A stretch of DNA of 64,000 nt. Origin: Hyaloraphidium curvatum SAG 235-1 (lineage: Eukaryota > Fungi > Monoblepharomycota). Where the stretch lies: the NCBI GenBank assembly GCA_025558095.1, contig JAIVFI010000023.1:558001-622000 (forward strand), written 5' to 3'. Positions 13,170-63,121 of this stretch are shown piece by piece. The notes beneath the pieces are model-generated. The model worked only from the letters and a program-made list of their open reading frames with translations. It was not told where the DNA came from and did no database searches. Position numbers and translations under genes: made by a program. Positions within the stretch are counted from its first letter, which is position 1, and every line of letters begins with the position of its first letter.

Positions 13170-15393
13170 ATGGGGGACCCATACGGAGCGCCGGGCGAGC
13201 TGAACCGGGCCCTCATGGACGGGAGCCTCCCCATTCAGGGCCAGGGGGCCATTCCCGCCGACCAGGCGGCGGCGCAGCTCGGAGGCTTGAAGCAGGTCAA
13301 CCAGAGGGGTTTCGCTGAGGGGAGGGGCAAGAAGAAGGCGCTCTTCATTGGGGTAAGCTGCCTCCTCGCCCACGAGCGATTCTATGTCGTAACACGAGTT
13401 CACGCGAACCAGATCAACTACCCCGGCACTGAGGCCGAGCTCCGGGGCTGTATCAACGATGTTCGGGTATGGATCGACAACAAAGGGCCCCAGAGTGCCC
13501 GCCGGTAGCTGACTGGCGTCCCACAGAACATGTACAACTTCGTCAAGACGAACTACGGCTTCGCGCAGCAGGTTAGTCTTGAGCCGTGCTCAACGGAGCT
13601 GATCGATTGAGCTGATTGTGCGGCCGTTCCAGGACATGATGGTCCTCACGGACGACAACCCGAACCCGTCGGGCAGGCCCACGGCGCAGAACATCATCGG
13701 CGCCATAGGCTGGCTCGTGAGCGGCGCTGCTCCCGGCGACTCGCTGTTTATGCACTACTCGGGACACGGTGAGCAGAAACGGAGCGGAGACGATAAACGG
13801 TACCTGACATTTGGTGTGTGCAGGGGGCACTGCGCGCGGCCAGGGCGGCACGATGCAGACCATCATCCCCGAGGACTACAAGAGGGTCGGCCAGATCTCG
13901 GACATCCAGCTGCACAACTACCTGTGCAAGAAGATCCCCGCCGGCTGCCAGCTGACGGCCATCTTCGACTCTTGCCACTCGGGCTCCGTGCTCAACCTCC
14001 CGTGGTCCTTCGTCGCCGCAGGCAGCCGCGAAGCCGGCGGCACCAAGATCGTCGAGGTCAACGGCCAATCCGGCATCGGCGCCTCCATGCTCTCCATGAT
14101 GTCGCAGTGGGGCAACAACCCGCAGCAGCTCATGAACATGATGTTGCAGATGCAGTCGCAAGGCTACGCGGTCACGAGCGGTGGCCGCGACCTGGTCACG
14201 GCCAACGCCATCGCCGACGCCCAGGTTCCGAAGTACACGATCCAGGCCGGTGGGTTTCGCAGGATCAGCGCGACAGATCTAAGGCGGCTGACATGTTGAT
14301 TGCGACCCGAAGGCGACACGCTGTGGAACCTCGTTCAGGCTGGCAAGGCCCCTTCGGTCGACGTCCTCATGCAGGCGAACCCCGGCATCGTGCCCGAGAT
14401 GCTCATGCCTGGCCAAGTCATCAACCTCGCGGTGCCGCCCAAGCCCCGGGACGCGCCCTTGATGATGGCAGGCGGGATATCGACCTACACGATCCAGGCC
14501 GGCGACACGTACTGGAACTTGGTGCAGAAGGGTTCGTTCGTTGGTTGCAATGGTCGTTGCAGCTCGGGTCCTGACCCGTCGATCCACCAGGTCGCGCGCC
14601 TTCCGTTGAAGCTCTCCAGGCCGCAAACCCGGGCGTCAACCCCGAGCAGCTCCAGATCGGCCAGGTCATCAACGTGCCCGAGTCGGCCGCGGCTGGTGTC
14701 GGCGGGCTCCGCTCCCTCGACGGCGTCCCCTCGGTTCCCTACACCATCGTGCAGGGCGACACGTACTGGAACCTTGTCGAGCAGGGCAAGGCCACCAGCG
14801 TCGACGCGCTCAACAAGGTCAACCCGGGCATCAACCCCGAGAACCTGCAGATCGGCCAGATCATCAACCTTCCCGTCTCTGCCACCGACCGCAGTACGTC
14901 CACTGCGTCCTCCTTCCTCCTAGCATTGCGATTTGCTAACCCGTCTGACCAGGTTTCGGCTCCTTCCTCGCCGCCCTCTTTGGCGGCTCCGTCGCACCCC
15001 AGTTCGTCCCGCCTCAGAACCCGACCGTCCCCCCGCCGCAGGCCCCCCCGGCAGGCAGTGGAGGGCAGGCCATGACCGGCCTCCAGGTCGACATCACGCA
15101 GGGCACCTGCATCCAGCTTTCCGGCTGCCAGGACGACCAGACCTCGGCGGACGCGACCATCGGCGGCAAGCCGACCGGCGCGCTGTCCTGGGCCTTCCTC
15201 ACGGCCATGGCGCAGATGCAGCGGCCGACGTACGAGCAGCTGATCCTGAAGATCCGGCAGTTGCTCGCCGGCAAGTTCACCCAGATTCCCCGTAAGTGGT
15301 GCCCGCGGACGGTGCCGCTGCCGTTGCTGACTCCAGATGGCAGAGCTGTCGACCGGGTATCAGATGGATCTCAAGGCGCCGTTCTCTCTCTAA
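13170..15393 (+). CDS. Metacaspase (peptidase C14) with three LysM domains inserted between p20 and p10
   Basis: Spliced: KKALFIG/INYPGTEAELRGCINDVR, catalytic HYSGHG (His codon 13765) and IFDSCHSG (Cys codon 13973). Three repeats of YTIxxGDTxWNL...ANPGIxPExLxxGQVIN(L/V) at ~14234-14875. p10 region: SGCQDDQTSADATIGGKPTGALSWAF...FTQIPQLSTGYQMDLKAPFSL*. Introns include 13353-13412, 13467-13526, 13572-13632 and 13769-13823. Confidence 0.93.
14234..14875 (+). repeat. Three tandem LysM domain-coding repeats
   Basis: YTIQAGDTLWNLVQAGKAPSVDVLMQANPGIVPEMLMPGQVINL; YTIQAGDTYWNLVQKGRAPSVEALQAANPGVNPEQLQIGQVINVP; YTIVQGDTYWNLVEQGKATSVDALNKVNPGINPENLQIGQIINLP. Confidence 0.9.
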
Positions 15394-15428
15394 GGTTGTG
15401 TATTGCTGCGAAAAAGATAACTATCGAT

Positions 15429-16382
15429 CTAGAGGCGCGACTTGCCGTTCCAGGACTTGTATCCCGGTCCCGGGCGGCTGCCCTGCTTCGCGTCGAACGT
15501 GCCGGCCTCCACGTCGGCGATGAAGCGGACCGTCTCGCGCACGCACTCGGCTGGCTTCTCGTAGATAAGCCAATGCCCGCAGTCGTCCAAGTCCACGAGG
15601 CGGATCCGGTCCGGATGCCTGCGGTAAAGCCACCATCCGTTCTCGACGCGCGCGATGCGGTCGTCCCGGCCTTGAAGCAGCAGGATAGGGGCGTTCCCGC
15701 CCGCCAAGTAGTCCTCTTTCGGCGTGACGAAGGTGGCCTTGCTCTGCGCCCGGAGAACGCGAAAGTCGGCCTCACGCTGGAGCTTCTCGTCCGGGGTGAG
15801 CTCCGACTCGGGCTTCGGCCTGCGGACGAGCGAGGCCACAAGGGCATCATCTGTCTTGTCCGAAGCCAGGATGAACTTGGTGAGGATGACCCGTTCCGCG
15901 AACGGCATGCTGCGCTCCTTGTTGAGCCGTCGCTGCGCGGCGTCGACCTCCTTGGACGCCGGGAACAGGCCTCCCGAGGCGTACATCACGAGGCCCTTGA
16001 CCAGATCGGGCCGGTCCGCCGCGACGCAGCGTGCCGTGCGATGACCATAGGCCCAGCCACCGAGAAAGACCTTCCGGCCCTTCCACAGGTGCTCGATGAG
16101 CATGACAACGTCCTGGGCCAGGAAATGCATGTCGACTTTCGGAGGAAACGCCGCGTCTCGGGTTCCCCCTTCCATGCAGCGGGGCGAGGCGACGATTATT
16201 CGGAGATCGGGCCGGGCTGCGAGCAGCTGGGCGGGGAACTTGTGCATTGTGCCGGCTCCCGAGCCCATGCCAGGCAGGAGGACGAACGGGATTCCGTTCT
16301 CGGGCCCCAGGGCACGGTACGAGAGCACGAGGCCCGGGGCGACCTCGGCCAGCGACGGCGGAACCGAAGAAATGTCCTGCAT
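15429..16382 (-). CDS. Alpha/beta-hydrolase fold protein with Ala at the nucleophile position (GWAYG)
   Basis: FVLLPGMGSG, DMHFLAQDVV, FLGGWAYGHRTAR, PDLVKGLV, PILLLQGRDD, DCGHWLIYEKP. No introns are needed. Confidence 0.85.
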   Translation of the reverse strand: MQDISSVPPSLAEVAPGLVLSYRALGPENGIPFVLLPGMGSGAGTMHKFPAQLLAARPDLRIIVASPRCMEGGTRDAAFPPKVDMHFLAQDVVMLIEHLWKGRKVFLGGWAYGHRTARCVAADRPDLVKGLVMYASGGLFPASKEVDAAQRRLNKERSMPFAERVILTKFILASDKTDDALVASLVRRPKPESELTPDEKLQREADFRVLRAQSKATFVTPKEDYLAGGNAPILLLQGRDDRIARVENGWWLYRRHPDRIRLVDLDDCGHWLIYEKPAECVRETVRFIADVEAGTFDAKQGSRPGPGYKSWNGKSRL

Positions 16383-16495
16383 GGCTACACTATCTGAAGC
16401 GGTAGAGGCACGAAACGCCGCCTGCGTCAACGCGGGCACCGTCAGTCACCGTGCGGATTGACCGCCACCCCATCGACGCGAGCCCGCCCCGCACC

Positions 16496-46962: not shown

Positions 46963-47594
46963 CTATCCGTCCTCCATCCGAGCAGTAGCCGGCCCTGTGT
47001 GGCAGCGAGGCTTGTGGTTCCTCCAGTCGGCGCGCTGGCACTCGCGAGAGCAGTACGACACCGACTTGCATCTGGCGCACCGTTGCAGTTCCGACACGGG
47101 CTGTAGGCCTGGCTGGTGAGGCAGGTGCCCGTCATCGAACCCCGCCCGCGCCCTCGCCCAGTGATGGCCGAGAAGGCCCTGTCCATGAGCTTCGGAAGGG
47201 GCTTGTTGCAGATGGGAGATCGGCAGAGGGGGGCGAAGATGGTGCAAAGGAAAGAGAAGAGGCGGCCTTCGTCGTTGCGGTTGTGGACGACGACGCCAGA
47301 CAGCTTTGTGCGGTGGCCGCATATGATGCAGGGGCTGCGAAAGGCAGATCCGGTCGGCGGGTTCGTTTCGGGGCACCACGCAGACTCCAAGGGCGAGGCG
47401 GGCCTGCCGCCCCTCGAGAACGACGGCTGCCATTTCAACGAAAGCGTGATGTTTCGATTTGTCCAGAGGCTGGCGATCAATTGAGTATCGTACCGTCGTC
47501 ACCAAGCTAGAGAGGATGCTGATGACGTGCAAGGAGCTGAATCCTTAGAAATACCGAGACCGGAGCCCCACGATCTTGGCTTGGGAGACGGCAT
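46963..47594 (-). pseudogene. MYND zinc-finger gene, copy 1 (frameshifted)
   Basis: LQRCARCKSVSYCSRECQRADWRNHKPRC lies in a different frame from the upstream CIICG...PLCRSPIC segment. The intact paralog at 54599-55339 has both in one frame. There is an early stop after the homologous ATG. Confidence 0.78.
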
Positions 47595-47861
47595 TGCGTC
47601 CAGCTCCAGCTCTCCGCGATCGGATGAGCGAATCCCGTCGTACTTGCATGGCGCTGCCTTGACGATCAATACCATGAATGCTTATTATTATCAACGATTT
47701 TGCTCGATCCTGAAGCTGTACATCACGGGTGCTATGTTGCGTCTCGGTTTGCGGTTCGTCAGCGCGTCGTCTCGACCCTGTCGCGCCGCCACCTTCCCTC
47801 GTCGGCGATCCGGGGCCGCATCGCGCATCTGCCCGCCTTCCGGCACCCTCCGTCGACCGCG

Positions 47862-49844
47862 ATGGCCGATGGTGCCGGCTCCGGCGGGGATTCGGGGCCT
47901 CCGCCCGGACCGGCACCCCCATCAGAGTCCCGCAACCTCCAGACGCCGCTGGTGCTCCCGCGTCCCGCGAGCTTCCAGCTCGATTGGCGGGATATCGTGC
48001 GCGAAACAGATTTCTCTACCGGTCGACCGCGAAAGCTCGGCAGCGGAGCTTTCGGGGTGGTGTACGCGGCCAAGCTGAAGCGGGACATGGACACACTGGT
48101 TGCGCTCAAGATTCTGCAGTGGTCGGGCGATGAGGGACTCCGGCGGAAGCAGCACGAGTCTTTTTCCCGGGAGGTCGAGGTCTGGCAGACCCTGACCGAC
48201 GACCACGGTATGTCGCGTTCTGCGGAGAGGATGGCCTCGCGCTGAACTTGGTGCAGTGCTCCGATTCCTGGGCTACACCGTCGATCCTTATCTCACGCTG
48301 GTATCGGAAGTGGCGGAGACGGATCTCGCGAGCCTACTCCAGGGCCCGCCCCGACCAACATTTCCGTGGGTTGACGCGCAGCGCTGCTTGCTCCATGTCG
48401 CCCTCGGCATGAGACACCTCCATTCCAAGGACATTGTTCATTGCGATCTGAAGCCCGCCAACATCCTACGACGAAACGGGATCTACAAAGTCGCCGACTT
48501 TGGGCTTTCCGCCTTCAGGGACTCTGCTTTGGGCGGAACCCGCGGCTACCTCGCCCCCGAAGCTCTGTTCCAGGACGTGGGACCGCGTGAGCTCCCATCG
48601 GATGTGTACAGCTACGGGATCGTTGCTTACGAGCTCAACGCGGGACAGTGTCCTGATCTGCCTGGCTCTTTGGCCTACCGCTCTGGATCACCTTTGCGGC
48701 GGCCGTTTGGAATCACCGATGCCGTGTGGAACTTGATCGAGAGCTGTACGGACTGGCAGCCGCTGGATCGGCCCGATTTCCGGGCCATCGTCGCCGTCGT
48801 GGAAGCGCTGTCTCGGCTCGCTTCTGAACCCGGGCCCGACGTGCTGCAGAGCGGCAACGATTGGAGCCTGTCGTGTGCGCTCACGGAGACCGCCGCCGCG
48901 ATGTATTCGACAAGCGAGCGGGACGGAAGCTCGGCATCATGCCTTCAGGGCATGTTTCAGCTTCATGAGCCCGACATTACCTACGATACCTCAATTGTCC
49001 TTGGCCAAAACTCCTTCTTGACAGTCTATCGGGGCGGGCTTCATGGCTTTGGAGATAGTGCGATCAAGGTCTTCAGATCCTGGTGCCACAAGGACTACGT
49101 GAACGAGCTTCTGAAGGCCGAGTTCGAGGTCTCCTGGGGAAAGCTCCCCGCCCATGAGAATGGTGCGTAACGAGGAACTGCAGCATATCACATCCGGACT
49201 CAAACTACCTCGTAAACGTTACAGTCGTCCCATTCTTTGGTTTCTGCACGTCTCCCCCGCTTGTTGTGACGGAATTCTGCGCCGGTGGAAACCTATCACA
49301 GTTTATGGCACGGCACGACTGGCACACCCACCTTGGCTTTCGCCTACTTGCCAATGCGGCCACTGGCATCACCTTCCTACATTCAAAGGACATCATCCAC
49401 GGGGGACTTAAGCCTGAAAACATCCTCATTGATGACAGCTTCGGCTATCCCGTTGCCAAGGTATCAGACTATTGCATGCCCCAGATTTTCACGAAGCTAG
49501 CTACCCACGACACCTTCGAGCCCGAGTTTCAGCATGGAGAAGATTTCGACATCGCCTATGCTTCTCCAGAGTCGATAACTGGGGAACGGTTGCCAAAGGC
49601 TTCCGATGTGTGGTCCTTCGGAATGGTCTGCTGGCACGTTCAGGCCCATGGGCAGCGCCCTTATGGTCCGAGGCCTGGGTTTCCGATAGTTCAGGCCATC
49701 CGCCGTGGGCAGTGCCCGCCAAGGCCGTACAGAACTACTGATGCCGTCTGGAGCCTCATCCAGTCGTGCTGGAGCCTGGAAACCGAACGGCGGCCGACAA
49801 TGGCGGCGGTGACGGCGGAGTTGATCCGCCTCAGGGACACTTGA
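47862..49844 (+). CDS. Tandem TKL kinase-pseudokinase
   Basis: Domain 1: LGSGAFGVVY, VALK, HCDLKPAN, DFG, APE. Domain 2: LGQNSFLTVY, SAIK, HGGLKPEN (no catalytic Asp), SDYC in place of DFG, SPE. Introns at 48208-48256 and ~49163-49225. Confidence 0.88.
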
Positions 49845-51785: not shown

Positions 51786-53012
51786 TCAAATGGCAGCCAA
51801 CGCCCCTTCCAGCTCGCGCGCCGCCTCCTCCAGCCTCCTACGCCCTTCGGCTCCGTCATCGAACAGCGTCCAAGGTGCTTTCGACCGCGCCCACCCACGG
51901 AGCTCGGCCGCCCTTGCCCGCCTGGCGTCTTCCGTTCCGACACCGTGCAGCCACTCGGGGCTAGCGATTTCCAGCTTGGCGGCACAATTCGGGCGTGCCA
52001 GAAACTCCACGATGACCCGTTCGGCCTCCGCAAACGCGTGTGCGCAATCGAGGTCCGGGTAGAGGGAGATTGAAAGCTCCGTGACCCGAGGCGGGAAACC
52101 TTGGCGCAAGTGACGCACGATGCCCGACGTGCCGCCCTTGATGTCGAGAGACGTGAGGCTGGTACACGCCGTGATCTGGGCCCAAAACTCGTCGCGATCG
52201 GCCACGGCGAGATGGAACAACGAGGTCGGGCGGAAATCCGGCCGCCGCCGGAGAAGTTCCGAAACCACGCTGTGGTCGACGTTCTCCAGCGTCTTGATCT
52301 TGCGCATAACCGCCGAAGACAGGGCCGCAAGGAGCAATGCTTGATCTTGAGTCCCGTTAATCGAATCGTCGATTTCGTCGGCATAGAGTATGATCTCCTT
52401 GAGCCGCGGCGAATCCATCGTGATGCCCTCGCAGATTAGCCGCAGCATATCGTTGACAGGCCAGCTCAGCACCAGCTGCTGGACGACGGGGAACATTGCC
52501 GATGGGAAGAACTGCGCTCGGTCCTTCCATTGGGGTTCGAGGTACGGGTCCCGTTGCAACCGCAGCGTGTCCACGTTGGGCCACGGTAGCGCCGAAAAGC
52601 GTCCTAAAGCTCCCGCGTTGCGGACGTCGATCTCCAAGTCCGTGATTCGCGGTGCCAACGCCACGACGAGCCCGGAATCCCACGGCCAGCTGGCCTGAGC
52701 GCCAGAATCCAACAGCACCAGGCGCCGGCACAGGCGAAACTTGCCCTCTTCCCCCGCCCCGGCCGAGCCGCCGACGAAGCGCCACATGCCGTCCAGGTCC
52801 CGAAAAACGCGCGACCATTCGAGTTCCCCTTCAGCGTTCACGCCGTAGTCGAAGACCATGTCGAGGAGCCTCGGGGCGAGGTGGGGCAAAAGGAGCTCGC
52901 ATGCGCCGCGCGACGCCAGCGCCATCTCGAGGAGCGTGCGCGCCGGTACGGACCGCGCGACATTCAGGAGGAGCTCGGGCGGCAGTGCGAGGCCATCGCT
53001 GGGGTCCGACAT
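51786..53012 (-). CDS. F-box-like / degenerate-LRR protein, copy 2
   Basis: MSDPSDGLALPPELLLNVARSVPARTLLEMALASRGACELLLP, collinear with 45445-46701 over its full length. Confidence 0.75.
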   Translation of the reverse strand: MSDPSDGLALPPELLLNVARSVPARTLLEMALASRGACELLLPHLAPRLLDMVFDYGVNAEGELEWSRVFRDLDGMWRFVGGSAGAGEEGKFRLCRRLVLLDSGAQASWPWDSGLVVALAPRITDLEIDVRNAGALGRFSALPWPNVDTLRLQRDPYLEPQWKDRAQFFPSAMFPVVQQLVLSWPVNDMLRLICEGITMDSPRLKEIILYADEIDDSINGTQDQALLLAALSSAVMRKIKTLENVDHSVVSELLRRRPDFRPTSLFHLAVADRDEFWAQITACTSLTSLDIKGGTSGIVRHLRQGFPPRVTELSISLYPDLDCAHAFAEAERVIVEFLARPNCAAKLEIASPEWLHGVGTEDARRARAAELRGWARSKAPWTLFDDGAEGRRRLEEAARELEGALAAI

Positions 53013-53425
53013 TGTTCGAAGTCGCACGGGACTAGCGACCCGGCCCGTCCGACCCCGACTGTGGAGTGGGCGGAGGAGGCAAACTGGCACTCCGAGCAGT
53101 TCCCCTGGACACTTATCCAAATATCAAAGCGTGACATGCTACTGGTCACGGATGCATCGTGTCAGCGCTTGGATCCGTCGCGCATCGTTCCCTGGGCGCT
53201 AGAACCTCCACTATTGCTTCCAATTAGCGCTTGCTCTCCCGTCTGCGACCTCGAGCAGCCTCCCCACCTCCACCAACCTATTCCGACCCTTATCTCCGGC
53301 CCACTGCATGTCCACCAGCGGCAGGTGTGCCTCCGCATGCGGTATGTCGTCGGATTGAGGTTTGCTATCAGCAACTCCATCCGTGGGGGCCCCGTTCACT
53401 GCATGGGTGAAGCATTTCGGGGTCA

Positions 53426-54340
53426 TCATCTGCCCTCCCTCGGCTGGCAGACCGCCTTGTGGCGCGACCAATCCTTTCGCTGGCACTCGGGCGAGCAGTA
53501 CCGCATTGACTTGCACTTCCCGCAGCGCTGCATGCCCCTGGATCTCTCGGTGGCGAAGGCCCTGCAGCCGACGGCGGCGCAGAGGCAGCCCTCCCCGAGG
53601 GCGACCGGGTAGTCCGCTGCATGGCCCGCATCCGACCGCTCCCTGCATGTCGCAACGTCGCAGTGCGGAAAGATGCCGACGTCAATCTGCTCGGCGTCAC
53701 CCACGGCGACGGTGGAGATGCGGATTCTGTAGGCGCTGGTGGCCCTGCGGCAGCCCACGCACCGCCAATCCTGCCAGGTCCGCAGCCCCTCGCTGGCGGC
53801 GTCAGCGCGCACCCGGTGGAGGATCGAGGCAAAGTTCGAAGCAAGCATGGTGCCGTCTTTGTCCGCTGCCGGCAGCTCGAAGGCGGCCCGGAAGATTTCT
53901 GCGGTGCCGCCAGCTGACCAAAGCGCTACGGCGGCATGCACGGGGCGGAAGTCGAGCTCGCGCGTAGCGTCGTCGAGGTCCATTACGCGCGGGTCCATCA
54001 GCGCCTCCGTGTACTTTGCCTCCTTGGCAATGCATTTGGGTGCCGCGCACCGCGGTACGCACATGAGGAGAAGCGAGCGCGCCCAGCCGCCCCCGGCCGG
54101 CACGTCGTTTAGAACGCAGGGGAACTCGACCGCGGGAGCGGTGCCGCAGGAATAGCACTTCCACGGGCGCGCATCGACCGCCGCGGCCTTCCACGCCGCG
54201 ACGGAGGGCAGCCACGGCTCGATGCGCGCAGCGGCCCCCGCGGCGCGAAGCGCGTCGGTGGGAAGCTGGAAGATGCGCACGGCCTCGGTGGGCGGCGAAC
54301 CCGGGACTGTGACCAAAAGTCTGACAGAGATCTCCTCCAT
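53426..54340 (-). CDS. MYND zinc-finger protein with two upstream W-x-CxxC...P-x-C-x4-C repeats
   Basis: C-terminal MQRCGKCKSMRYCSPECQRKDWSRHKAVC. Upstream WKCYSCG...VPRCAAPKC and WRCVGCR...FPHCDVATC. Confidence 0.82.
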   Translation of the reverse strand: MEEISVRLLVTVPGSPPTEAVRIFQLPTDALRAAGAAARIEPWLPSVAAWKAAAVDARPWKCYSCGTAPAVEFPCVLNDVPAGGGWARSLLLMCVPRCAAPKCIAKEAKYTEALMDPRVMDLDDATRELDFRPVHAAVALWSAGGTAEIFRAAFELPAADKDGTMLASNFASILHRVRADAASEGLRTWQDWRCVGCRRATSAYRIRISTVAVGDAEQIDVGIFPHCDVATCRERSDAGHAADYPVALGEGCLCAAVGCRAFATERSRGMQRCGKCKSMRYCSPECQRKDWSRHKAVCQPREGR

Positions 54341-54598
54341 GGGGCCGGTTGTTTCGTCCCGCGTCGGAACAGCGGTCAAGCTTCAGGACGAGGAACTCCG
54401 ATGGCGTCGTTTGTTTACTTCCCTTCCGAGGCGGCGTCTCCGAGCTCTAATGCTCTTGGCCGCAGCAACGCAATACATCAGCTTTCGCCATCGGCTGCTT
54501 GTTCCGTGTACCCGCGACTGCTCCCGGCAGAGCGTATGCACTGCCCGATAGCATCGTTGAGCCTGTCACTCCGCGATCTGCGATGCCAGCCGAGCCCG

Positions 54599-55339
54599 TC
54601 AGCCCTCCTCCTTACGAACAGCGGCCTCCCCAGAATGGCAAAGAGGCTTGTGGTTCCTCCAGTCAGCGCGCTGGCACGCGCTCGAGCAGTACGACACAGA
54701 CTTGCACCTGGCACACCTCTGCAGCTCCGATACGTGCTTGTAGGCCCGGCAGGTGAGGCAGATGCCAGTCATCGAACTCCCAGAGCGTCCGATGAGAGCA
54801 AAAAAGACCCTGTCCATTAGCTTCGGAACGAGCTTGCAGCAGCGGGGAGATCGGCGGGCTGGTGCAAAGACGGTGAACAGAAACGAGTTAAAGAGGCGCC
54901 CGTCATCGTTGCGGTTGCGGTTGTGGACGGCTATCGATGACAGCTTCACGGTACGCTGACCGCAGATGATGCAGGGGCTCCGAAAGGCCGATCTGGCCGG
55001 CGGGCTCGTTTCGGGCAACAGGCACAACCCGAGAGTAAAGCGGGCCTGCAGTCTTTCGAGAACGGCAGCCGCCATCTCCACGAAAGCGTGATGCCTCGAT
55101 TCGTCCAAAGGCGAGCTGTCTGGCTCGAAAACAGGGGTCCCGTGGCGGATGCGTTCCGACAAGATTGGACCAGCGAACTTGTCGATCCCGCCGGCCGAGT
55201 ACCGCAGCTGGTCTTCTCCTCCGTGCCATTGCCGACCGTCATCACCAGTCGGAGAGGATGCCGATGACGTGCGAGGAGCTGAATCCTTAGCAATACCGAG
55301 ACCGGAGCCCCACGACTTGGCTTGGGAGACGGACGGCAT
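54599..55339 (-). CDS. MYND zinc-finger protein, copy 2 (intact)
   Basis: CLTC...LQRCARCKSVSYCSSACQRADWRNHKPLC in a single ORF with an upstream PCIICG motif. Confidence 0.8.
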   Translation of the reverse strand: MPSVSQAKSWGSGLGIAKDSAPRTSSASSPTGDDGRQWHGGEDQLRYSAGGIDKFAGPILSERIRHGTPVFEPDSSPLDESRHHAFVEMAAAVLERLQARFTLGLCLLPETSPPARSAFRSPCIICGQRTVKLSSIAVHNRNRNDDGRLFNSFLFTVFAPARRSPRCCKLVPKLMDRVFFALIGRSGSSMTGICLTCRAYKHVSELQRCARCKSVSYCSSACQRADWRNHKPLCHSGEAAVRKEEG

Positions 55340-55473
55340 TGCGTCCAGCTCCAGCTCTCACGCGATCGGATGAGAAAATCCCATCGTACTCGCATGGCGC
55401 TGCCTTGACGATCAATAACATGAATTCCGATTCTCTCAACGAGTAGCTCCTGTAGCTGTACACACGGGTGCAA

Positions 55474-57974
55474 ATGTTGCGTCTCGGTTTGCGGTACTTG
55501 CCGCGCCCCACCTTCCCTCGTCGGCGATCCGGGGCCGCATCGCGCATGTTCGCGCCCTCCCGGCATCCCTGGCCGACGGCAATGGCCGTTGGTGCCGACC
55601 TCGGCGGGGACTTGGAGCCTCCGCCTGGACCAGCACCCCCATCGGAGTCTCGCGACCTCCGGACGCCGCGTGTGCTCCCGCGTCCCGCGAGCTTCCAGCT
55701 CGATTGGCGGGATATCGTGCGCGACACGGATTCCTCCACCGGTCGACCGCGAAAGCTCGGCAGCGGAGCTTTCGGGGTGGTGTACGCGGCCAAGCTGAAG
55801 AGGGACATGGACACACTGGTCGCGCTCAAGATTCTGCAGTGGTCGGGCGATGAGGGACTCCGGCGGAAGCAGCACGAGTCTTTTTCCCGGGAGGTCGAGG
55901 TCTGGCAGACCCTGACGGACGACCACGGTATGTCGCGTTCTGCGGAGAGGATGGCCTCGCGCTGAACTTGGTGCAGTGCTCCGATTCCTGGGCTACACCG
56001 TCGATCCTTATCTCACGCTGGTATCGGAAGTGGCGGAGACGGATCTCGCGAGCCTACTCCAGGGCCCGCCCCGACCAACATTTCCGTGGGTTGACGCGCA
56101 GCGCTGCTTGCTCCATGTCGCGCGCGGCATGAGACACCTCCATTCGAAGGACATTGTTCATTGCGATCTGAAGCCCGCCAACATCCTACGACGAAACGGG
56201 ATCTATAAAGTCGCCGACTTTGGGCTTTCCGCCTTCAGAGACTCTGCTTTCGGCGGAACCAGCGGCTATCTCGCCCCCGAAGCTCTTTTACGGGACCTGG
56301 GACCGCGTGGGCTCCCATCAGATGTGTATAGCTACGGGATTATTGCTCACGAGCTCAATGTGGGACAGTGTCCTGATCTGCCGGGATGCTTGGTCTACCG
56401 CTCAGGATCACCTTTGCGGCGGCCGTTTGGAATCACCGATGCCATGTGGAACTTGATCGAGAGCTGTACGGACTGGGAACCACTGGAACGGCCTGATTTC
56501 CGGGCCATCATCGATACTGTGGAGCACTTGACCATCGTACCGATGGTGGATCGCATTATCTTGCAGGTTGGAAACGGCACTTACGGCGCGGATGGGGATC
56601 CGAAGAACCTTCCGATGGCGACGGACAGCGTCGATCTGCTCAACACGGTGTTGACATCCTTCTATGGTTTTTCGGGCGGGCTTAACTACAACCAAAGCGC
56701 AGCTGAGATTCGCAGGGCCGCAAGCGCCGCCGTGTCCGACATCCGGACTTCCTCGGGGACTTCTCTCATTCACCTTGTTGGTCACGGCGGGGATCGGAAC
56801 GGACGATTCGTATTCGAAGGCGCCTGCTCTCCAGACGCCATTGGTTCAGGGGAAGTCAACACGGTGGACCTTGAGCATGATATTCTTGCACGAATCCCCA
56901 AAGATCATGCGGGTCTCGTGGTCGCTCTGCTGGACTGCTGTCGGGGCGCTGCTGGGGAGGAGGATCGGCCCTTTGAGGAGATAAGGCCGAACGTCCTCCT
57001 TGGGTTCGCCGCCAGCCATAACGCTAAAGCTTACGGCTGTCTGTACTCATTTCTGGTGGCCGAGGAGCTCTGGAGACGCTTTAACCGCCAGTCAGCTCCC
57101 TTCTCGTGGCGCAGTGCTCTTGATGCTGTCCAGAAGCGGATCATCAAGAGGACCAACGTGGCCGCTTTGCAACAGGACACGAAAGACGCCGATTTAGCGC
57201 AAAAGGTGCAGCAAGTTCCCGAACACATGCCCATGAGTGGTGAGATTAATTGGACGGAGAACCGCTTCCTGCTTGTGAGCTTGCCAGTCGCGAATCCAAG
57301 CAGTTTTATTGACCTTCGTCTCCTCGCAGAAACCGTTACCGAAAACTGCGACGGAAGCAAGTGAACAGGAAAGTCTGCGCCTATCTTTTGAACGACACAC
57401 GAGGGAGCTCGAAGAAACCAAGTCATTGGAGCAGAGCTACCCACTTGCGTCCTACATGTCCTACATGTCTGATCTCTTTGATTCACCGTACCGATTGGAG
57501 CTGATCTTCTCTGATGGATCTTCACGGAGCATTGGTGGTGATTCGGGGATCGCCGCGGGGGAGATGCTGCTCCAGATCCACGCAATGTCATCAAGCCCGC
57601 TAACTCCGCAGCGAATCAAGAGCTTCCATCTTCAATCTTTGAAGCATCAATCCCGTTACCATCTTCCCCGGCTACCAGGATCAACGCTTTTCTTGTTTCG
57701 AGGCTTCGCAGAGGAAGCGATTGAGCAGGCATTTGGTGGATTTGCAGGCCCGGAGACTGCCACGGGGTCTGGGCGGGTCACCACCGCCGGCGAATCCAAG
57801 TTTGGCAAACGCGTCGGTGCAGAGGATGAAATCATACCCCTGGAAGCTCGGAAGCGCGGCAAGCTTGCGGAAACCTCGCGAGTGAGCAGCACGGTGATAG
57901 CACTCACCGGAGGTTCCGCTTGGCTCGCCTCCCACTTTCTTTCCGGCGCCAACAACGGCGCGGACGATAGTTGA
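55474..57974 (+). CDS. TKL kinase fused to a caspase-like (peptidase C14) domain and a C-terminal domain
   Basis: Kinase nearly identical to 47862-48790 (intron 55928-55976). Then ILQVGNGTY...NLPMATDSVDLLNTVLTSFYGF, LIHLVGHGG (His 56783), VALLDCCRG (Cys 56939), LLGFAA, VQKRI...QQVP. Intron 57275-57329 brings in the 57309-57974 frame. Start is either 55474 or 55582. Confidence 0.82.
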
Positions 57975-58698
57975 GGATGGTATTGTAGACCTGTGCATGA
58001 TCCATGCTGGAAAGAGGAGCCGCAGGCGAGGTTGCGAGAGGTGGAAGCGGTGACGAAGCTGGAGGAGATCTTGGTTCCCCGGTGGCGAGCTGGCGTGATG
58101 GATGTCGTCGTGTTCTTATCTATCTTTGTCCTATTGCCGTCGTTTCGTTGAATGCCGAGCTGCTGTCAAGTGATCGTCGATGGTTGTCCCGGTTGTGACG
58201 GCGTCTTCCCACAACCTGCCGAGATCGGCCCCAAAGATGACCTTCGGTAAGATTTATTGTCGAATCCGTGCAATTCGATGTGAATGGCGTCGAGCAATAA
58301 GCTCGCCGCCGACGGTCTGCTTCGAGATTGGAGATCGACGTGCGCGATCACGGGCCGGACGCGGCAGTCCCCGCGGGAGCCGAACCGGCACTGCAGCTGA
58401 GATACGTTGAGAAGTGCACTTCGAAGAATTCTCTAGAACAAGGACGTCCTTGCGGGTACCTGCCCGAAGACAATTCAGCACAAGGAGAGGAGACGATCCC
58501 GTGAAGGACAGTAGCCATCTCGGGCCACGAACTTCGGAAAAGCTCATGGAGCTACAGTGCCTGATCCTCGATGCTCTACGAGACTATTGCACGCCGTGCT
58601 TGAGCCTTTGGGGAGTCGGCCGATCGGCTCTTTTCCATCCGGCTGTCCCGCCTCCGACGCCACTTTGTTGACGTCTTTCCCCGCCGCCGTTTTACACG

Positions 58699-61600
58699 AT
58701 GGAGTCCCGTCTCGAGGCGTGGAAGGCGCACCTCGCGTCGCCGACGGAGCTGCTGCTGCCGACGGACTACCCGCGGCCGGTGCCGCTGCGCGTCGTCGAG
58801 TCGGAGCTCGCGTATGCCGTGCCACCGGCGGCCGTCTCCGCGCTGGCGGATCTGGCCAAGGAGCTCGGCGTTTCGCGCGACGATGCATTGCTTTCCTTGT
58901 TGGGCATTGTGTTGGCGCGGCACGCGGGCGAGGAGGACGTGTGCGTCGGCGGACTCGCGGGGACGGCCGGCGGCAGCGAGGACGGCGCGGCCGCGCCCGA
59001 GGTCTCCGATGCCGCGTCCGCGTGGACGGCGCAGCAGACGGTCCTGCGGTTCCGCGTCGAGCGCGGCATGGCGGTGCGCGACGTGGCGGCCGCCGTGGCC
59101 GCCGCGGCCGCGTTCGCCCGCGGGAACCACGTGCCGCCGGCGGAGCTCATGGCCGCGCTGGCCGACGGCGCCGCGTCGCCGCCCGCGCTGATGCGGGTGC
59201 GGTTCCTGCCGCTGGCCGGCGAGGGCGCCCGCGTCTCGATCGCCCACGCGCCGCACCTGGCATCGGACCTGGCAGTGCTGCCCGCCCTGGACGGCCCGGC
59301 GCCCTCGGTGCGCTACGTGCTCAACTCGCTGCTCTTTTCCACCGCCCGGATCGCCGACCTGCACGCCCTGCTGGTGCAGCTGTGTTCATCCTGCCGGCCC
59401 GGCGACGACGCCTACGGCGTGTCGCTGATCACCGACGCCGCCCGCTCCGTGCTTCCGGACCCGACCGCCTCGCTCGATTGGGAGGGTTGGCGCGGCGCGA
59501 TCCCCGACATCCTGCACCGCAACGCGGAAGCACACCCGGATCGCGTCTGCGTGGTCCAGTCGCTGCCCGACGGCAGCGCGGAATCCTACACCTACGGCCA
59601 GGTCGACGCGGCGTCCAACGTGCTCGCGAACCACCTGATTTCCGCCGGCGTGAAGCGCGAGGACGTCGTCACGCTGTACGCCGCCCGCTCCGCCGACATG
59701 GCGGCCGCGGTCATGGGCGTCCTCAAGACCGGCGGCATCTTCAACGTGCTCGACCCGGCCTACCCCGTCGAGCGCCAGAAGATCTACCTCGGCGTCGCCC
59801 GACCCCGCGCCCTCGTCGTGCTGGCCAAGGCCGGCGAGATCCACCCGGACGTGCTGGCCTACATCGACGCCGAGCTGCCCGGCATCCCCAAGGTCGTCGG
59901 CCTGGCCATGACCAAGGACGGCACCTTTGCTTCCCCCTCCTTCACCGCCCCGGATGCCAAGTTCCCCGGCGTCGAGCTCGGCCCCGACTCCCCCGCCACC
60001 CTCTCCTTCACCTCGGGCTCCACCGGCCTCCCCAAGGGCGTCAAGGGCCGGCACTTTTCCCTCACTCACTTCTACCCCTGGATGGCCTCGCGGTTCGGCC
60101 TCTCCTCCGACGACCGCTTCACCATGCTCTCCGGGATAGCCCACGACCCCATCCAGCGCGACATCTTCACCCCCCTCTTCCTGGGCGCGCAGCTCCGCGT
60201 GCCCACCGCCGACGACATCGCCACCCCCGGCCGCCTCGCCGAATGGATGCGCGACAACGCGTGCTCCGTGACCCACCTCACCCCCGCCATGGGCCAGCTC
60301 CTCACCGCCAACGCCTCGGCCAGGATGCCGGCCCTCCGCAGCGCCTTTTTCGTGGGGGACGTACTCACCCTGCGCGACGTCCGCCGGCTGCAGGCCCTGG
60401 CGCCCGGCTGCGCCGTGGTCAACATGTACGGCACCACCGAGACGCAGCGCGCAGTGTCGCACTACGTCGTGCCGCCGGGGACCAACCTTGAGAGCTACAA
60501 GGAGGTGGTGCCCGCGGGCAAGGGGATGCACGACGTGCAGCTGCTCGTCGTTTGTGGGGAGGGGGAGGGGAGGAGGACGGCGGGTATTGGAGAGGTGGGG
60601 GAGCTCTATGTGAGGAGCGGGGGGCTGGCGGAAGGGTACCTCGAGGGAGGGGAGGAGAAGTTTGTGGCGAATTTCTTCAGGTGGGTGGTCGGCGCGACGA
60701 GCCTTCTGTTTATCGGGGCTCATCTTCATCACCATCATCCCCCACAGGGACCCCAACGTCCCCCCCAAGCCCACGCACCCCTCCCCCACCCCCCTCCCCT
60801 TCTTCTTCGGCCCGCGCGACCGGATGTACCGCACCGGCGACCTCGGCCGGTATCTCCCCACGGGCGACGTCGAGTGCACGGGCCGCAAGGACGACCAGGT
60901 CAAGATCCGCGGGTTCAGGATCGAGCTGGGGGAGATCGACACCCACCTGAGCCAGTGCCCGAAAGTGAGGGAGAACGTGACGAGGGTGCGGAGGGACAGG
61001 GACGAGGAGCAGGTGCTGGTGGGTGTCGCGCGCTGTTGAGCCTTCCATGCGGACGACTCACATCGCGAGCGCGTCGCCCCACAGGTATCGTACATCGTCC
61101 CGCAGCAGCACGAGGCCGACCACGACGCCCTCGCGCGCGAGATCCGCGCCTTCCTCTCCTCCAAGCTCCCCGCCTACGCCGTCCCGACCGTCTTCGTGGT
61201 GCTCAAGCGGATGCCGCTGACCCCCAATGGCAAGGTGGACAAGAACGCGCTGCCGTTCCCCGACACGCCGCGGTTCCGCCGGGGATCCATTGTCTCGCGC
61301 ACGACCTCGACCGCGGACGCGCAGCTCCCCGGCGAGCTCGCCGCGCTGCCGCCGACCACCCTCGCCGTGCTCGCCATCTGGGCGGACCTCCTCGCGGTCC
61401 CGCCGGCGTCGATCCGCCCCGCGGACTCGTTCTTCGACCTCGGCGGGCACTCGATCCTCGCCACCAGGCTGGTGTTCGAGATGCGGCGGCAGCTCGGCGT
61501 CGAGGTGCCCCTAGGGGTCGTGTTCAACCGGCCGTCGCTCGAGGCCATGGCGGCCGAGGTGGACAGGCTCAAGGCCGGCGATCTGGACGTCGCGGGGGGT

Positions 61601-63121
61601 GAGGACAAGGAGGCCGAGGGGGAAGAATACCCGTACGCGGCGCAGGTGGACGAGCTGGACGCCGGGTGGGCGCCCACCGAGGAGCAGAGGAGGGGGGCCA
61701 AGACGGGCAGGCCGCGGAGCATCTTCCTCACGGGCGCGACCGGGTTCCTGGGCGCCTTCATTCTGCGGGACCTCCTCGCGGACTTCCCCGATGCCACGGT
61801 GACGTGCCTCGTGCGCGCCGATACCCCCGAGAAGGGCGTCGACCGCGTGCGGGCAAACTGCGCCGCGCAGGGCGTGTGGGACGACGCGTGGGCATCGCAG
61901 AAGCGGATCCGCGCCGTCACGGGCGACCTCGGCAAGCCGCGCTTCGGGCTGGGCGACGCCGCGTGGACGGCGCTGGCCTCCAGCACCGACGCCATCGTGC
62001 ACAACGGCGCCACGGTGCACTGGGTCTTCCCTTACACCAAGATGCGCTCCGTCAACGTGCTCTCGACGGTCGCGTGCCTGGAGCTCTCGCTCGCCGACCC
62101 CAAGGGCATGATCCCGCTGCACTTTGTCTCGACGACGGCGGTGCTCGACACGCAGGCCTACGTGGCGCTGCTGGCCGACGGCACGAGGGTGCTCGAGTCG
62201 GACGACCTCGCGCGCTCGGCGGCGGGGCTCAAGGCGGGCTACGGGCAGACCAAGTGGGTCAGCGAGAAGCTGCTCATGCGTGCGAGGGGGAGGGGGTGCG
62301 CGGCGACGATCGTCAGGCCGGGGTACATCCTGGGCGACTCCAAGAGCGGAGGTGGGTCGTATGGGGTTGCGTTTTGGGCGAGGCGGATGCTGACGGGGGC
62401 GGAACTCGCAGTGACCAACACGGACGACTTCCTCATCCGGCTCATGAAGGGCTGCATCACCCTCGGGATCGTGCCCGAGATCACCAACGTCATCAACATG
62501 GTGCCGGTCGACTACGTCTCCAAGGTCGTCTCGTCGGTCGTCGGCGGATCCACGGCGGCCATCGAGAAGGGCGTCTTCCAGATATGGCAGCGCAACATGT
62601 ACGTCTCTTCCCTGCCGGTCCGCCGAGTCGACCAGCTCATTGCTCGCCTTCACAGGTTCCGCTTCATCGACCTGTTCCGCTGCCTGCGGCAGTACGGCTA
62701 CCCCGTCGAGCCGACGGCCTACATCCCCTGGCGCACCGCGCTCATGGACCACACCCTCAACTCGCAGGACAACGCGCTGTACCCGCTGCTCCACTTCGTC
62801 ATGGACGACCTGCCGACGAGCACCAAGGGCCCCGAGCTCGACGACGGCAACACCCGCGAGGTGACGGGCAACCTCGACTGCGGCGACATGGGCGAGCTGG
62901 TCGGGCTGTACATCTCGTACCTGATACAGGTCGGGTTCCTGGAGGCGCCACCGGCGCCCAAGGCCAACGGTGCCAACGGCACGGCGAACGGGACCGCAAA
63001 GGCAGCGGTCTCGGAGTCGGTCACGGAGTGGTTCGAGGGCGCCGATGCCGAGAGGAAGGCGCTGCCCGTGGTGGAGCTGACGGCCGAGATGAAGAAGCTG
63101 GTCGCCAGGAACAGGGAGTGA
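58699..63121 (+). CDS. LYS2: L-alpha-aminoadipate reductase large subunit (A-T-R)
   Basis: [62 protein letters not shown], carrier [11 protein letters not shown], reductase [43 protein letters not shown]. Confidence 0.96.

Follow-up and report, generated by a model that had tools for sequence, protein, structure and literature searches.

Regulated cell death in fungi is usually framed by metacaspases and NLR-like or HET systems. In animals, RIPK kinases and caspases are separate proteins that are linked by DD, DED and RHIM adaptors. Among the caspase-fold proteases, caspase-8, caspase-9 and the paracaspase MALT1 require dimerisation along beta6, MALT1 is autoinhibited by Ig3, and the S1 residues of MALT1 are Asp365, Asp462 and Glu500; in a table of the same 2015 review, paracaspases are listed as absent from fungi (PMC4357240). 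No description of a fungal or chytrid kinase-caspase or kinase-paracaspase fusion was found in the literature, and kinase fusions are not discussed in Asplund-Samuelsson 2012 and the cyanobacterial reviews. Here we describe such a gene within a 64,000-nucleotide (nt) stretch of eukaryotic, high-G+C DNA from Hyaloraphidium curvatum, referred to in the following as the window. Its product combines a TKL-like protein kinase domain, a Peptidase_C14 (C14) domain predicted to be proteolytically active and a further conserved part, the post-C14 domain (PCD). The locus is an expressed and spliced gene, and the family to which it belongs is small and previously undescribed in the literature.

The kinase-C14 gene occupies positions 55546-57974 (+) of the window and consists of three exons encoding a product of 774 amino acids (aa), P0001. 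A database search gave an identical match to the caspase-like part, the NCBI "kinase-like domain-containing protein" of H. curvatum, a monoblepharid-type fungus; a preliminary description of this DNA, made from its sequence, had already placed the gene in an early-diverging fungus. The exon join 55546-55927 + 55977-57274 + 57330-57974 translates exactly to P0001. In the unspliced sequence the kinase N-lobe is found in an open reading frame (ORF) at 55468-55965, the kinase C-lobe together with the caspase-like motifs in an ORF of 462 codons at 55976-57364, and a third ORF in a different frame ends at 57974. Exon 1 (55546-55927), which gives a Pfam kinase match, encodes a Pro-rich N-terminus of about 60 aa and then the kinase N-lobe. 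Intron 1 (55928-55976, 49 nt) lies within the kinase domain. Exon 2 (55977-57274) carries, in one unbroken frame, the kinase C-lobe and the entire C14 domain, separated by about 10 aa of linker, and is followed, directly after the C14 domain, by intron 2 (57275-57329, 55 nt), across which P0001 reads ...NRFLL / KPLPK... in the NCBI model. The TGA stop codon is located at 57972-57974.

Transcription of the gene was assessed from contigs of the sole public RNA run containing the locus, which were compared over positions 55000-58400 and carry no information on transcript ends or expression levels. Both introns have GT..AG ends and are exactly skipped in these contigs, demonstrating that the contigs derive from spliced RNA. 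On the + strand the RNA contigs start at 55518, which, together with the NCBI model, favors the ATG at 55546 over the start at 55474 assumed in the preliminary description. The coverage is made up of several contigs with small gaps between them at 56105-56146 and 56435-56446. One spliced contig of 1,624 nt comprises 56447-57274 joined to 57330-58102 and covers the last part of the kinase, all of the C14 domain, the domain that comes after it and a 3' untranslated region of at least 57975-58102, after which it continues into sequencing adapter. As this contig crosses the region from about 56510 to 56552, the kinase/C14 junction is located on one spliced transcript.

Neither a stop codon nor an intron separates the end of the kinase domain (about aa 311, about 56527) from the start of the C14 domain (about aa 320, 56552). 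The single frame of exon 2, in which Pfam recognized both Pkinase and C14, holds RPDFRAIIDTVEHL, ILQVGNGTY, LIHLVGHGG, LLDCCRG, LLGFAA and QQVP. The direct, intronless fusion and the order of caspase-fold motifs noticed earlier were therefore both recovered within one exon. The kinase-C14 pair recurs at five loci of the genome and in three environmental relatives and is thus far beyond chance.

The C14 domain extends over 56552-57274 (aa ~320-560) and was identified by Pfam PF00656, by an AlphaFold2 (AF2) model, by Foldseek and by VIA, an aligner independent of Foldseek. PF00656 scored 31.9 bits on the exon-2 ORF and 30.6 bits (3.5e-7) on P0001, with a cut-off of 21.4; three of the paralogs score near or just under this cut-off. 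When searched against the PDB, a profile of the eight family members matched only MALT1 entries (E 6.5e-4), and the single C14 sequence also matched MALT1 only, albeit weakly (E 0.044). In these hidden Markov model alignments, the predicted catalytic His397 (VGHGG; codon at 56783-56785), which is invariant in 8/8 members, aligns with MALT1 H415. The predicted nucleophile Cys449 aligns with MALT1 C464, and Asp447 is the counterpart of the MALT1 S1 residue Asp462; the Asp447-Cys448-Cys449 codons (LDCCRG) are located at 56933-56941 and are invariant in the family. LDCCR was aligned to MALT1 D462-M-C464-R in both the profile and the single-sequence alignments.

The AlphaFold2 model of the C14 domain, built from the eight-sequence alignment, reached a pLDDT of 82.7 and a pTM of 0.85. 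Foldseek returned 289 matches in the PDB at E <= 1e-3, led by MALT1 (6e-10) and followed by caspases-8, -7, -3 and -6, with metacaspases ranking lower. VIA, with about 205 residues aligned, gave Z 19.8 for MALT1 (208 residues, 19% identity), 19.7 for caspases-3/-8/-9, 19.1 for Arabidopsis metacaspase 4, 16.1 for the protease-like domain of c-FLIP and 15.0 for Yca1. Six main strands were assigned in the model by DSSP, a count that would fit a sheet lacking the two extra strands of metacaspases; nonetheless, Arabidopsis metacaspase 4 tied with MALT1 in Z. Profile, caspase/haemoglobinase fold and a His/Cys dyad, which in this family sits at the ends of beta3 and beta4, together make membership of the domain in family C14 solid, and peptidase activity is predicted from them. 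The preliminary description had proposed a caspase fold with a His/Cys dyad, and had considered D-x-C-R to resemble paracaspases and bacterial caspases rather than the metacaspase motif DSCHSG; the structural matches and the alignment to MALT1 agree with all three points.

Within family C14, the sequence of the domain leans toward the paracaspases as its nearest relatives, and membership in that group is not claimed. A caspase (C14A) assignment is not supported: caspases have QACxG and a basic S1 pocket formed by Arg residues, but here the position Cys-2 is occupied by Asp and not Gln (DCCRG), and the sequence profile matched no caspase in the PDB. For metacaspases, VGHGG and LDCCRG are found in the places of HYSGHG and DSCHSG, and the profile likewise matched no metacaspase in the PDB. 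Also the death or Ig domains of type 1 paracaspases were absent from P0001-P0008 according to Pfam. At the position of MALT1 Glu500 the family has an invariant Gly, and the position of MALT1 Asp365 is taken by D/E/Q/Y/K or an adjacent invariant Ser. With only the Asp462 equivalent conserved, the domain was not filed as a paracaspase and its P1 specificity is uncertain; cleavage after Arg/Lys may be predicted, with moderate confidence, from the invariant Asp at Cys-2.

The protein kinase domain is encoded at 55750-56527 across intron 1 (aa 69-311). In this region of P0001, Pfam identified Pkinase PF00069 (5.6e-35) and PK_Tyr_Ser-Thr PF07714 (7.6e-32), and the best solved relatives in a PDB search were CTR1 and B-Raf (~2.5e-21). 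The motifs GSGAFG (aa 72), VALK with Lys95, HCDLKPAN (aa 189), DFG (208) and APE (227) are present. The HCD motif indicates a kinase of the non-RD class, and, given the full set of motifs, the domain looks catalytically intact. The best PDB matches and the motifs support an affinity to the TKL group, as had been proposed before, the label following the best PDB and Pfam matches together with the motifs. Among six sequences examined, the N-terminal kinase (K1) has HCDLKPxN in five (unmatched in P0008) and DFG in all; VAxK is retained wherever the called protein includes the N-lobe.

Downstream of intron 2, positions 57330-57749 encode a helix (aa ~567-596) and the PCD (aa ~597-700) with the motif YPLASYM..LF..YRLE..F.DG. 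Homology over about 130 residues downstream of the C14 domain is shared by 5/5 genome loci and three environmental loci, and at the P0002 locus it extends past the annotated end. In the predicted structure, a long helix leads into a small alpha/beta unit, the core of which has a pLDDT of ~80-90. A fold search with the PCD reached Z 4.3 at best, the matches being designed proteins and small alpha/beta proteins with no relation to it, and neither Pfam nor NCBIfam had a matching family. Judged by its sequence, the PCD (~100 aa) is a previously undescribed conserved domain, and the order kinase-C14-PCD is the constant unit of the family as far as the homologous loci define it. The remaining C-terminal tail (57750-57974; aa 701-774) is predicted to be disordered (pLDDT <50) and is absent as conserved sequence in the paralogs.

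When the C14 domain was searched exhaustively with HMMER against 1.84 billion representatives, seven proteins were returned at E < 1e-30 and no match between 1.9e-37 and 6.5e-6. The next match (6.5e-6) is an immunoglobulin-domain protein without a Pfam C14 domain, and three weak caspase-like matches of unknown origin occurred at E 3e-4 to 7.5e-4. A word-indexed profile search with the family alignment returned only P0007 and no further members. The genome of H. curvatum contains exactly five copies, two on contig 13, two on contig 30 and the gene in the window. The annotated architecture is kinase-C14(-X) for P0001, P0002 and P0003, kinase-C14-kinase for P0005 and C14-Ank-kinase for P0004, where extra kinase ORFs are located directly upstream of the annotated start. 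The same domain order was found in an ENA metagenome relative (P0006/P0015) and in P0008, an environmental relative on a 96-kb Logan contig, and in a further environmental contig (P0007/P0017) kinase ORFs directly precede and follow the C14 ORF. A gene for a KH protein on the P0008 contig has its best named match in H. curvatum, followed by chytrids (49% identity to the annotated H. curvatum protein by BLASTP, 53% in a genome search), indicating that the host of P0008 is an unsequenced chytrid-grade fungus. Among the eight members, overall identity is 41-75%, and VGHGG, LDCCR and 48 further columns are invariant in 8/8. P0001 is the most divergent of the five H. curvatum paralogs. The linker between kinase and C14 domain measures ~10 aa in P0001 vs ~75 aa in P0002, and the C-terminal additions vary between a tail, an Ank-kinase and a second K1-like kinase.

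Two environmental loci (L008:823-4628 and L006:10001-12737) show the order kinase, C14, PCD, kinase, as in P0005, which hints that a protease between two kinases could be the older arrangement. Two of the paralog annotations look incomplete (L003:69-1161 and L004:1042-1458), as P0004 has the upstream kinase ORFs and the PCD of P0002 is encoded directly past the annotated stop; the P0002 locus also has a TGA inside the genomic C14 match. A further weak Peptidase_C14 match in the genome (G000:C4:295189-295509, -; 37.4 bits) lies within an open frame of 795 aa.

Taken together, the domain content makes it rather probable that the protein acts in signalling as a bifunctional enzyme, one chain of which would couple a kinase activity to a protease activity. 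The protease would be activated mainly by proximity or oligomerisation; the dimer-dependence of MALT1 and the initiator caspases, together with the control exerted by Ig3, favors this mode of activation. Raf-like TKL kinases also function as dimers. A homodimer prediction for the C14 domain gave a score of 0.00, which amounts to no verdict and is evidence neither way. Auto- or trans-phosphorylation may reinforce or license activation of the protease, which might then carry out limited proteolysis of specific substrates, probably after Arg/Lys. The PCD, situated at the position of Ig3 in MALT1, could have a part in regulation or recruitment. For such an enzyme, a role in stress, cell death or non-self response would be plausible; the kinase-gated protease of cell death or immunity put forward in the preliminary description is a conjecture. 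Non-RD kinases have been linked to innate immune signalling, which is taken here as a lead only. PADLOC returned generic kinase matches only (mad6, PD-T4-6 and others) and none on the C14 domain or the PCD, and these were not counted as evidence for a function in defence.

Some observations weigh against a coupled, paracaspase-like signalling enzyme. Structural comparison cannot split paracaspases, caspases and metacaspases (Z 19.8, 19.7 and 19.1). The acidic S1 pocket of MALT1 is not retained, as only one of its three residues, the Asp462 equivalent, is kept. The difference in linker length between the paralogs suggests tethering and not a rigid contact, and implies no fixed interface between the two domains. 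Finally, Pfam identified no domain of the death-fold, RHIM, CARD or NLR type in P0001. A more far-reaching version, according to which a chytrid-grade fungal lineage independently built a one-chain signalling or death switch from a kinase and a paracaspase-like protease, with the site-specific protease switched on by kinase-driven oligomerisation or by phosphorylation and controlled by the new PCD, is considered doubtful. If true, it would correspond, outside animals, to RIPK/caspase-8 or CBM/MALT1 signalling, and fungi would for the first time be known to have a paracaspase-like C14 system, distinct from metacaspases, whose regulatory partner is defined.

The constant K1-C14-PCD core with its variable C-terminal additions would also suit an auto-processing protein, in which the C14 domain would work mainly in cis, cutting its own chain, and thereby free the flanking kinase(s) or the C-terminal module. 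A self-cleavage model of this kind was put forward for the bacterial EACC1-type constant-caspase fusions by Kaur et al. 2020 (PMC7159879), and the C14 domain has a weak likeness to the NCBIfam family of EACC1-associated caspases, NF047832 (6.8e-7). However, the score of 29 bits is far under the cut-off of 140 and does not allow assignment to that family; no EACC1 partner gene was found in the neighborhood of the locus, nor a transmembrane segment, and P0001 has only the disordered tail after the PCD, leaving little to be freed. We therefore regard auto-processing, the main alternative, as unlikely to be the function of the architecture, although it is compatible with, and does not exclude, a coupled enzyme. 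It appears very improbable that the kinase is attached to a C14 domain without catalytic activity, serving as a scaffold or as a pseudo-protease that binds peptides, comparable to c-FLIP or the inactive bacterial vWA-MoxR caspase domains. c-FLIP does occur among the structural matches, and there is a bacterial precedent in that ~70% of the effector-position caspase domains in some bacterial systems are inactive (Kaur et al., PMC7159879). However, all eight members share the His, the Cys, the Gly residues beside the His and the Asp at Cys-2 without exception, a pattern expected of an active enzyme.

With respect to the history of the gene, the K1 tree and the C14 tree share one topology, in which the first to separate are the two environmental members that are most distant, followed by P0006 and then by the H. 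curvatum copies. These congruent trees point to one old fusion followed by co-divergence and duplication, and thus indicate that the kinase-C14 fusion arose once, was retained through speciation and duplication and is not a chimera. In P0004, by contrast, the kinase clusters with the Ank-kinase of the window (support 97/96), suggesting that the C-terminal partners have been shuffled. A segment at 55235-56513 (+), comprising the promoter region and the kinase, is duplicated within the window, the copy being located at 47492-48793 (90.2% nt identity by blastn; 85-91% at the aa level, intron included). The homology stops exactly at the kinase/C14 junction (48793 vs 56513). The paralogous gene (47492-49844, +) runs on into a second kinase-like domain, which is degenerate, its glycine loop included, and has no C14-PCD part; in the light of the congruent trees, it is this paralog and not the kinase-C14 gene that probably represents a recent chimera, of the kinase-pseudokinase type.

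The end of this homology at 56513 could also be explained by a recent gain of C14-PCD from bacteria or another foreign source, placed behind a resident kinase. In line with this, the G+C content at third codon positions (GC3) is 0.69 for the kinase and drops to 0.64 for the C14 domain and 0.53 for the PCD, and the nearest structural neighbors of the C14 domain in the ESM Atlas are bacterial caspase-family proteins (TM 0.65-0.72). However, a recent gain is most unlikely. The exhaustive search of the 1.84 billion representatives found no bacterial relative of the C14 domain at E <= 1e-6 and so lends no support to the bacterial origin considered in the preliminary description, and the gap in the HMMER results between 1.9e-37 and 6.5e-6 was not filled by profile or word searches. 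In addition, the K1-C14-PCD order is shared by four other loci and three other organisms with congruent trees, and a spliceosomal intron separates C14 and PCD. With no bacterial relative found in that search and an intron at this place, the drop in GC3 is a weak ground for a foreign origin, and it is simpler to regard the neighboring K1-pseudokinase gene as the recent chimera. The probability that the fusion stems from an error of assembly or annotation, or from the merging of two neighboring genes, is negligible: prokaryotic gene callers that split the environmental homologs show that gene models can mislead, but no support for an artefact was found here, and the unbroken frame, the 1,624-nt spliced contig over the junction, the five independent loci and the identity of the NCBI model with the exon join dispel the earlier concern about a chimeric or untranscribed junction.

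Several neighboring genes were noted. Upstream of the kinase-C14 gene and divergent from it are two MYND zinc-finger genes (53426-54379 and 54599-55339, -), and an F-box-like/LRR-like ORF (51786-53120, -) is located further upstream. In one environmental relative, a gene with Ank and F-box-like parts (L007:15-2024, -) is arranged head-to-head with the kinase-C14 gene. A conserved synteny of these F-box-like neighbors was considered and rejected, as their likeness is marginal (E 0.017) and gives only a hint of pairing. The translation of the downstream gene (58699-61602, +) contains SGSTGLPKG and may correspond to an adenylate-forming enzyme, possibly of the alpha-aminoadipate reductase type. 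The window also harbors, in pieces, a canonical metacaspase-like gene (13618-16397, +), with HYSGHG in the ORF 13618-14574 and SGCQDDQTSAD in the ORF 15072-16397; both ORFs match PF00656, and a LysM-like stretch (14300-14923) lies between these motifs.

The significance of the locus lies in a conserved and expressed fungal family in which a C14 protease is tied to a new constant domain and to a non-RD TKL kinase that looks active, and which offers a directly testable case of kinase-protease coupling within a single polypeptide. Its value is limited by similar architectures in databases, by a host that is not genetically tractable and by a function that is entirely predicted. The H. curvatum gene itself is already present in NCBI with both Pfam domains precomputed.

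Among the known systems, MALT1 is similar in being the sole PDB family matched by the profile and the top structural match; its His, its Cys and its Asp at Cys-2 align with those of the family. The two also share the short loop after the Cys, and the PCD occupies the position of the MALT1 Ig3 domain. In contrast to MALT1, the H. curvatum protein has no death or Ig domains, its PCD is an alpha/beta unit with no Ig-like match, the counterpart of Glu500 is Gly and that of Asp365 is variable, a kinase is fused to the N-terminus, and the host is a fungus. The EACC1-associated bacterial caspases resemble the family in combining a constant caspase-fold domain with variable signalling or effector domains, whereas the H. 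curvatum gene is eukaryotic and has spliceosomal introns. Yca1, a type I metacaspase, has the same clan CD/C14 fold and differs in its motifs HYSGHG and DSCHSG and its p10 motif SGCQDDQTSAD, compared to VGHGG and DCCRG in the H. curvatum protein. The resemblance to RIPK1/RIPK3-caspase-8 is one of functional analogy only, in that a TKL kinase would work together with a caspase-fold protease as a single signalling unit; the H. curvatum protein has no such adaptor domains as in animals, and the best PDB matches of its kinase are CTR1 and B-Raf and not the RIPKs.

The closest counterparts in overall architecture were found in the ESM Atlas, where the nearest clusters to a kinase+C14 query by language-model features belong to Arthropoda (0.98) and Actinomycetota (0.96). 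Pkinase and Peptidase_C14 occur in 97-100% of the members of these clusters (Arthropoda, ~672 aa, n=92; Actinomycetota, ~718 aa, n=91), which are like the H. curvatum protein in two-domain content and similar in length, a comparison by features only, which makes the clusters leads. The occurrence of a Pkinase+C14 cluster in Arthropoda was unexpected. Neither cluster was recovered by HMMER with the H. curvatum C14 domain at E <= 1e-3, suggesting that the relation is distant at best or that there is none. The combination of kinase and C14 domain is hence not unique to H. curvatum; the locus adds a data point on the linkage of TKL kinases to caspase-fold proteases, which animals accomplish via adaptors and Actinomycetota, and possibly arthropods, via fusion. 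What is new is that a fungal lineage has an isolated clade of C14 domains, the kinase partner of which is fixed and which comes with an accessory domain that is itself new.

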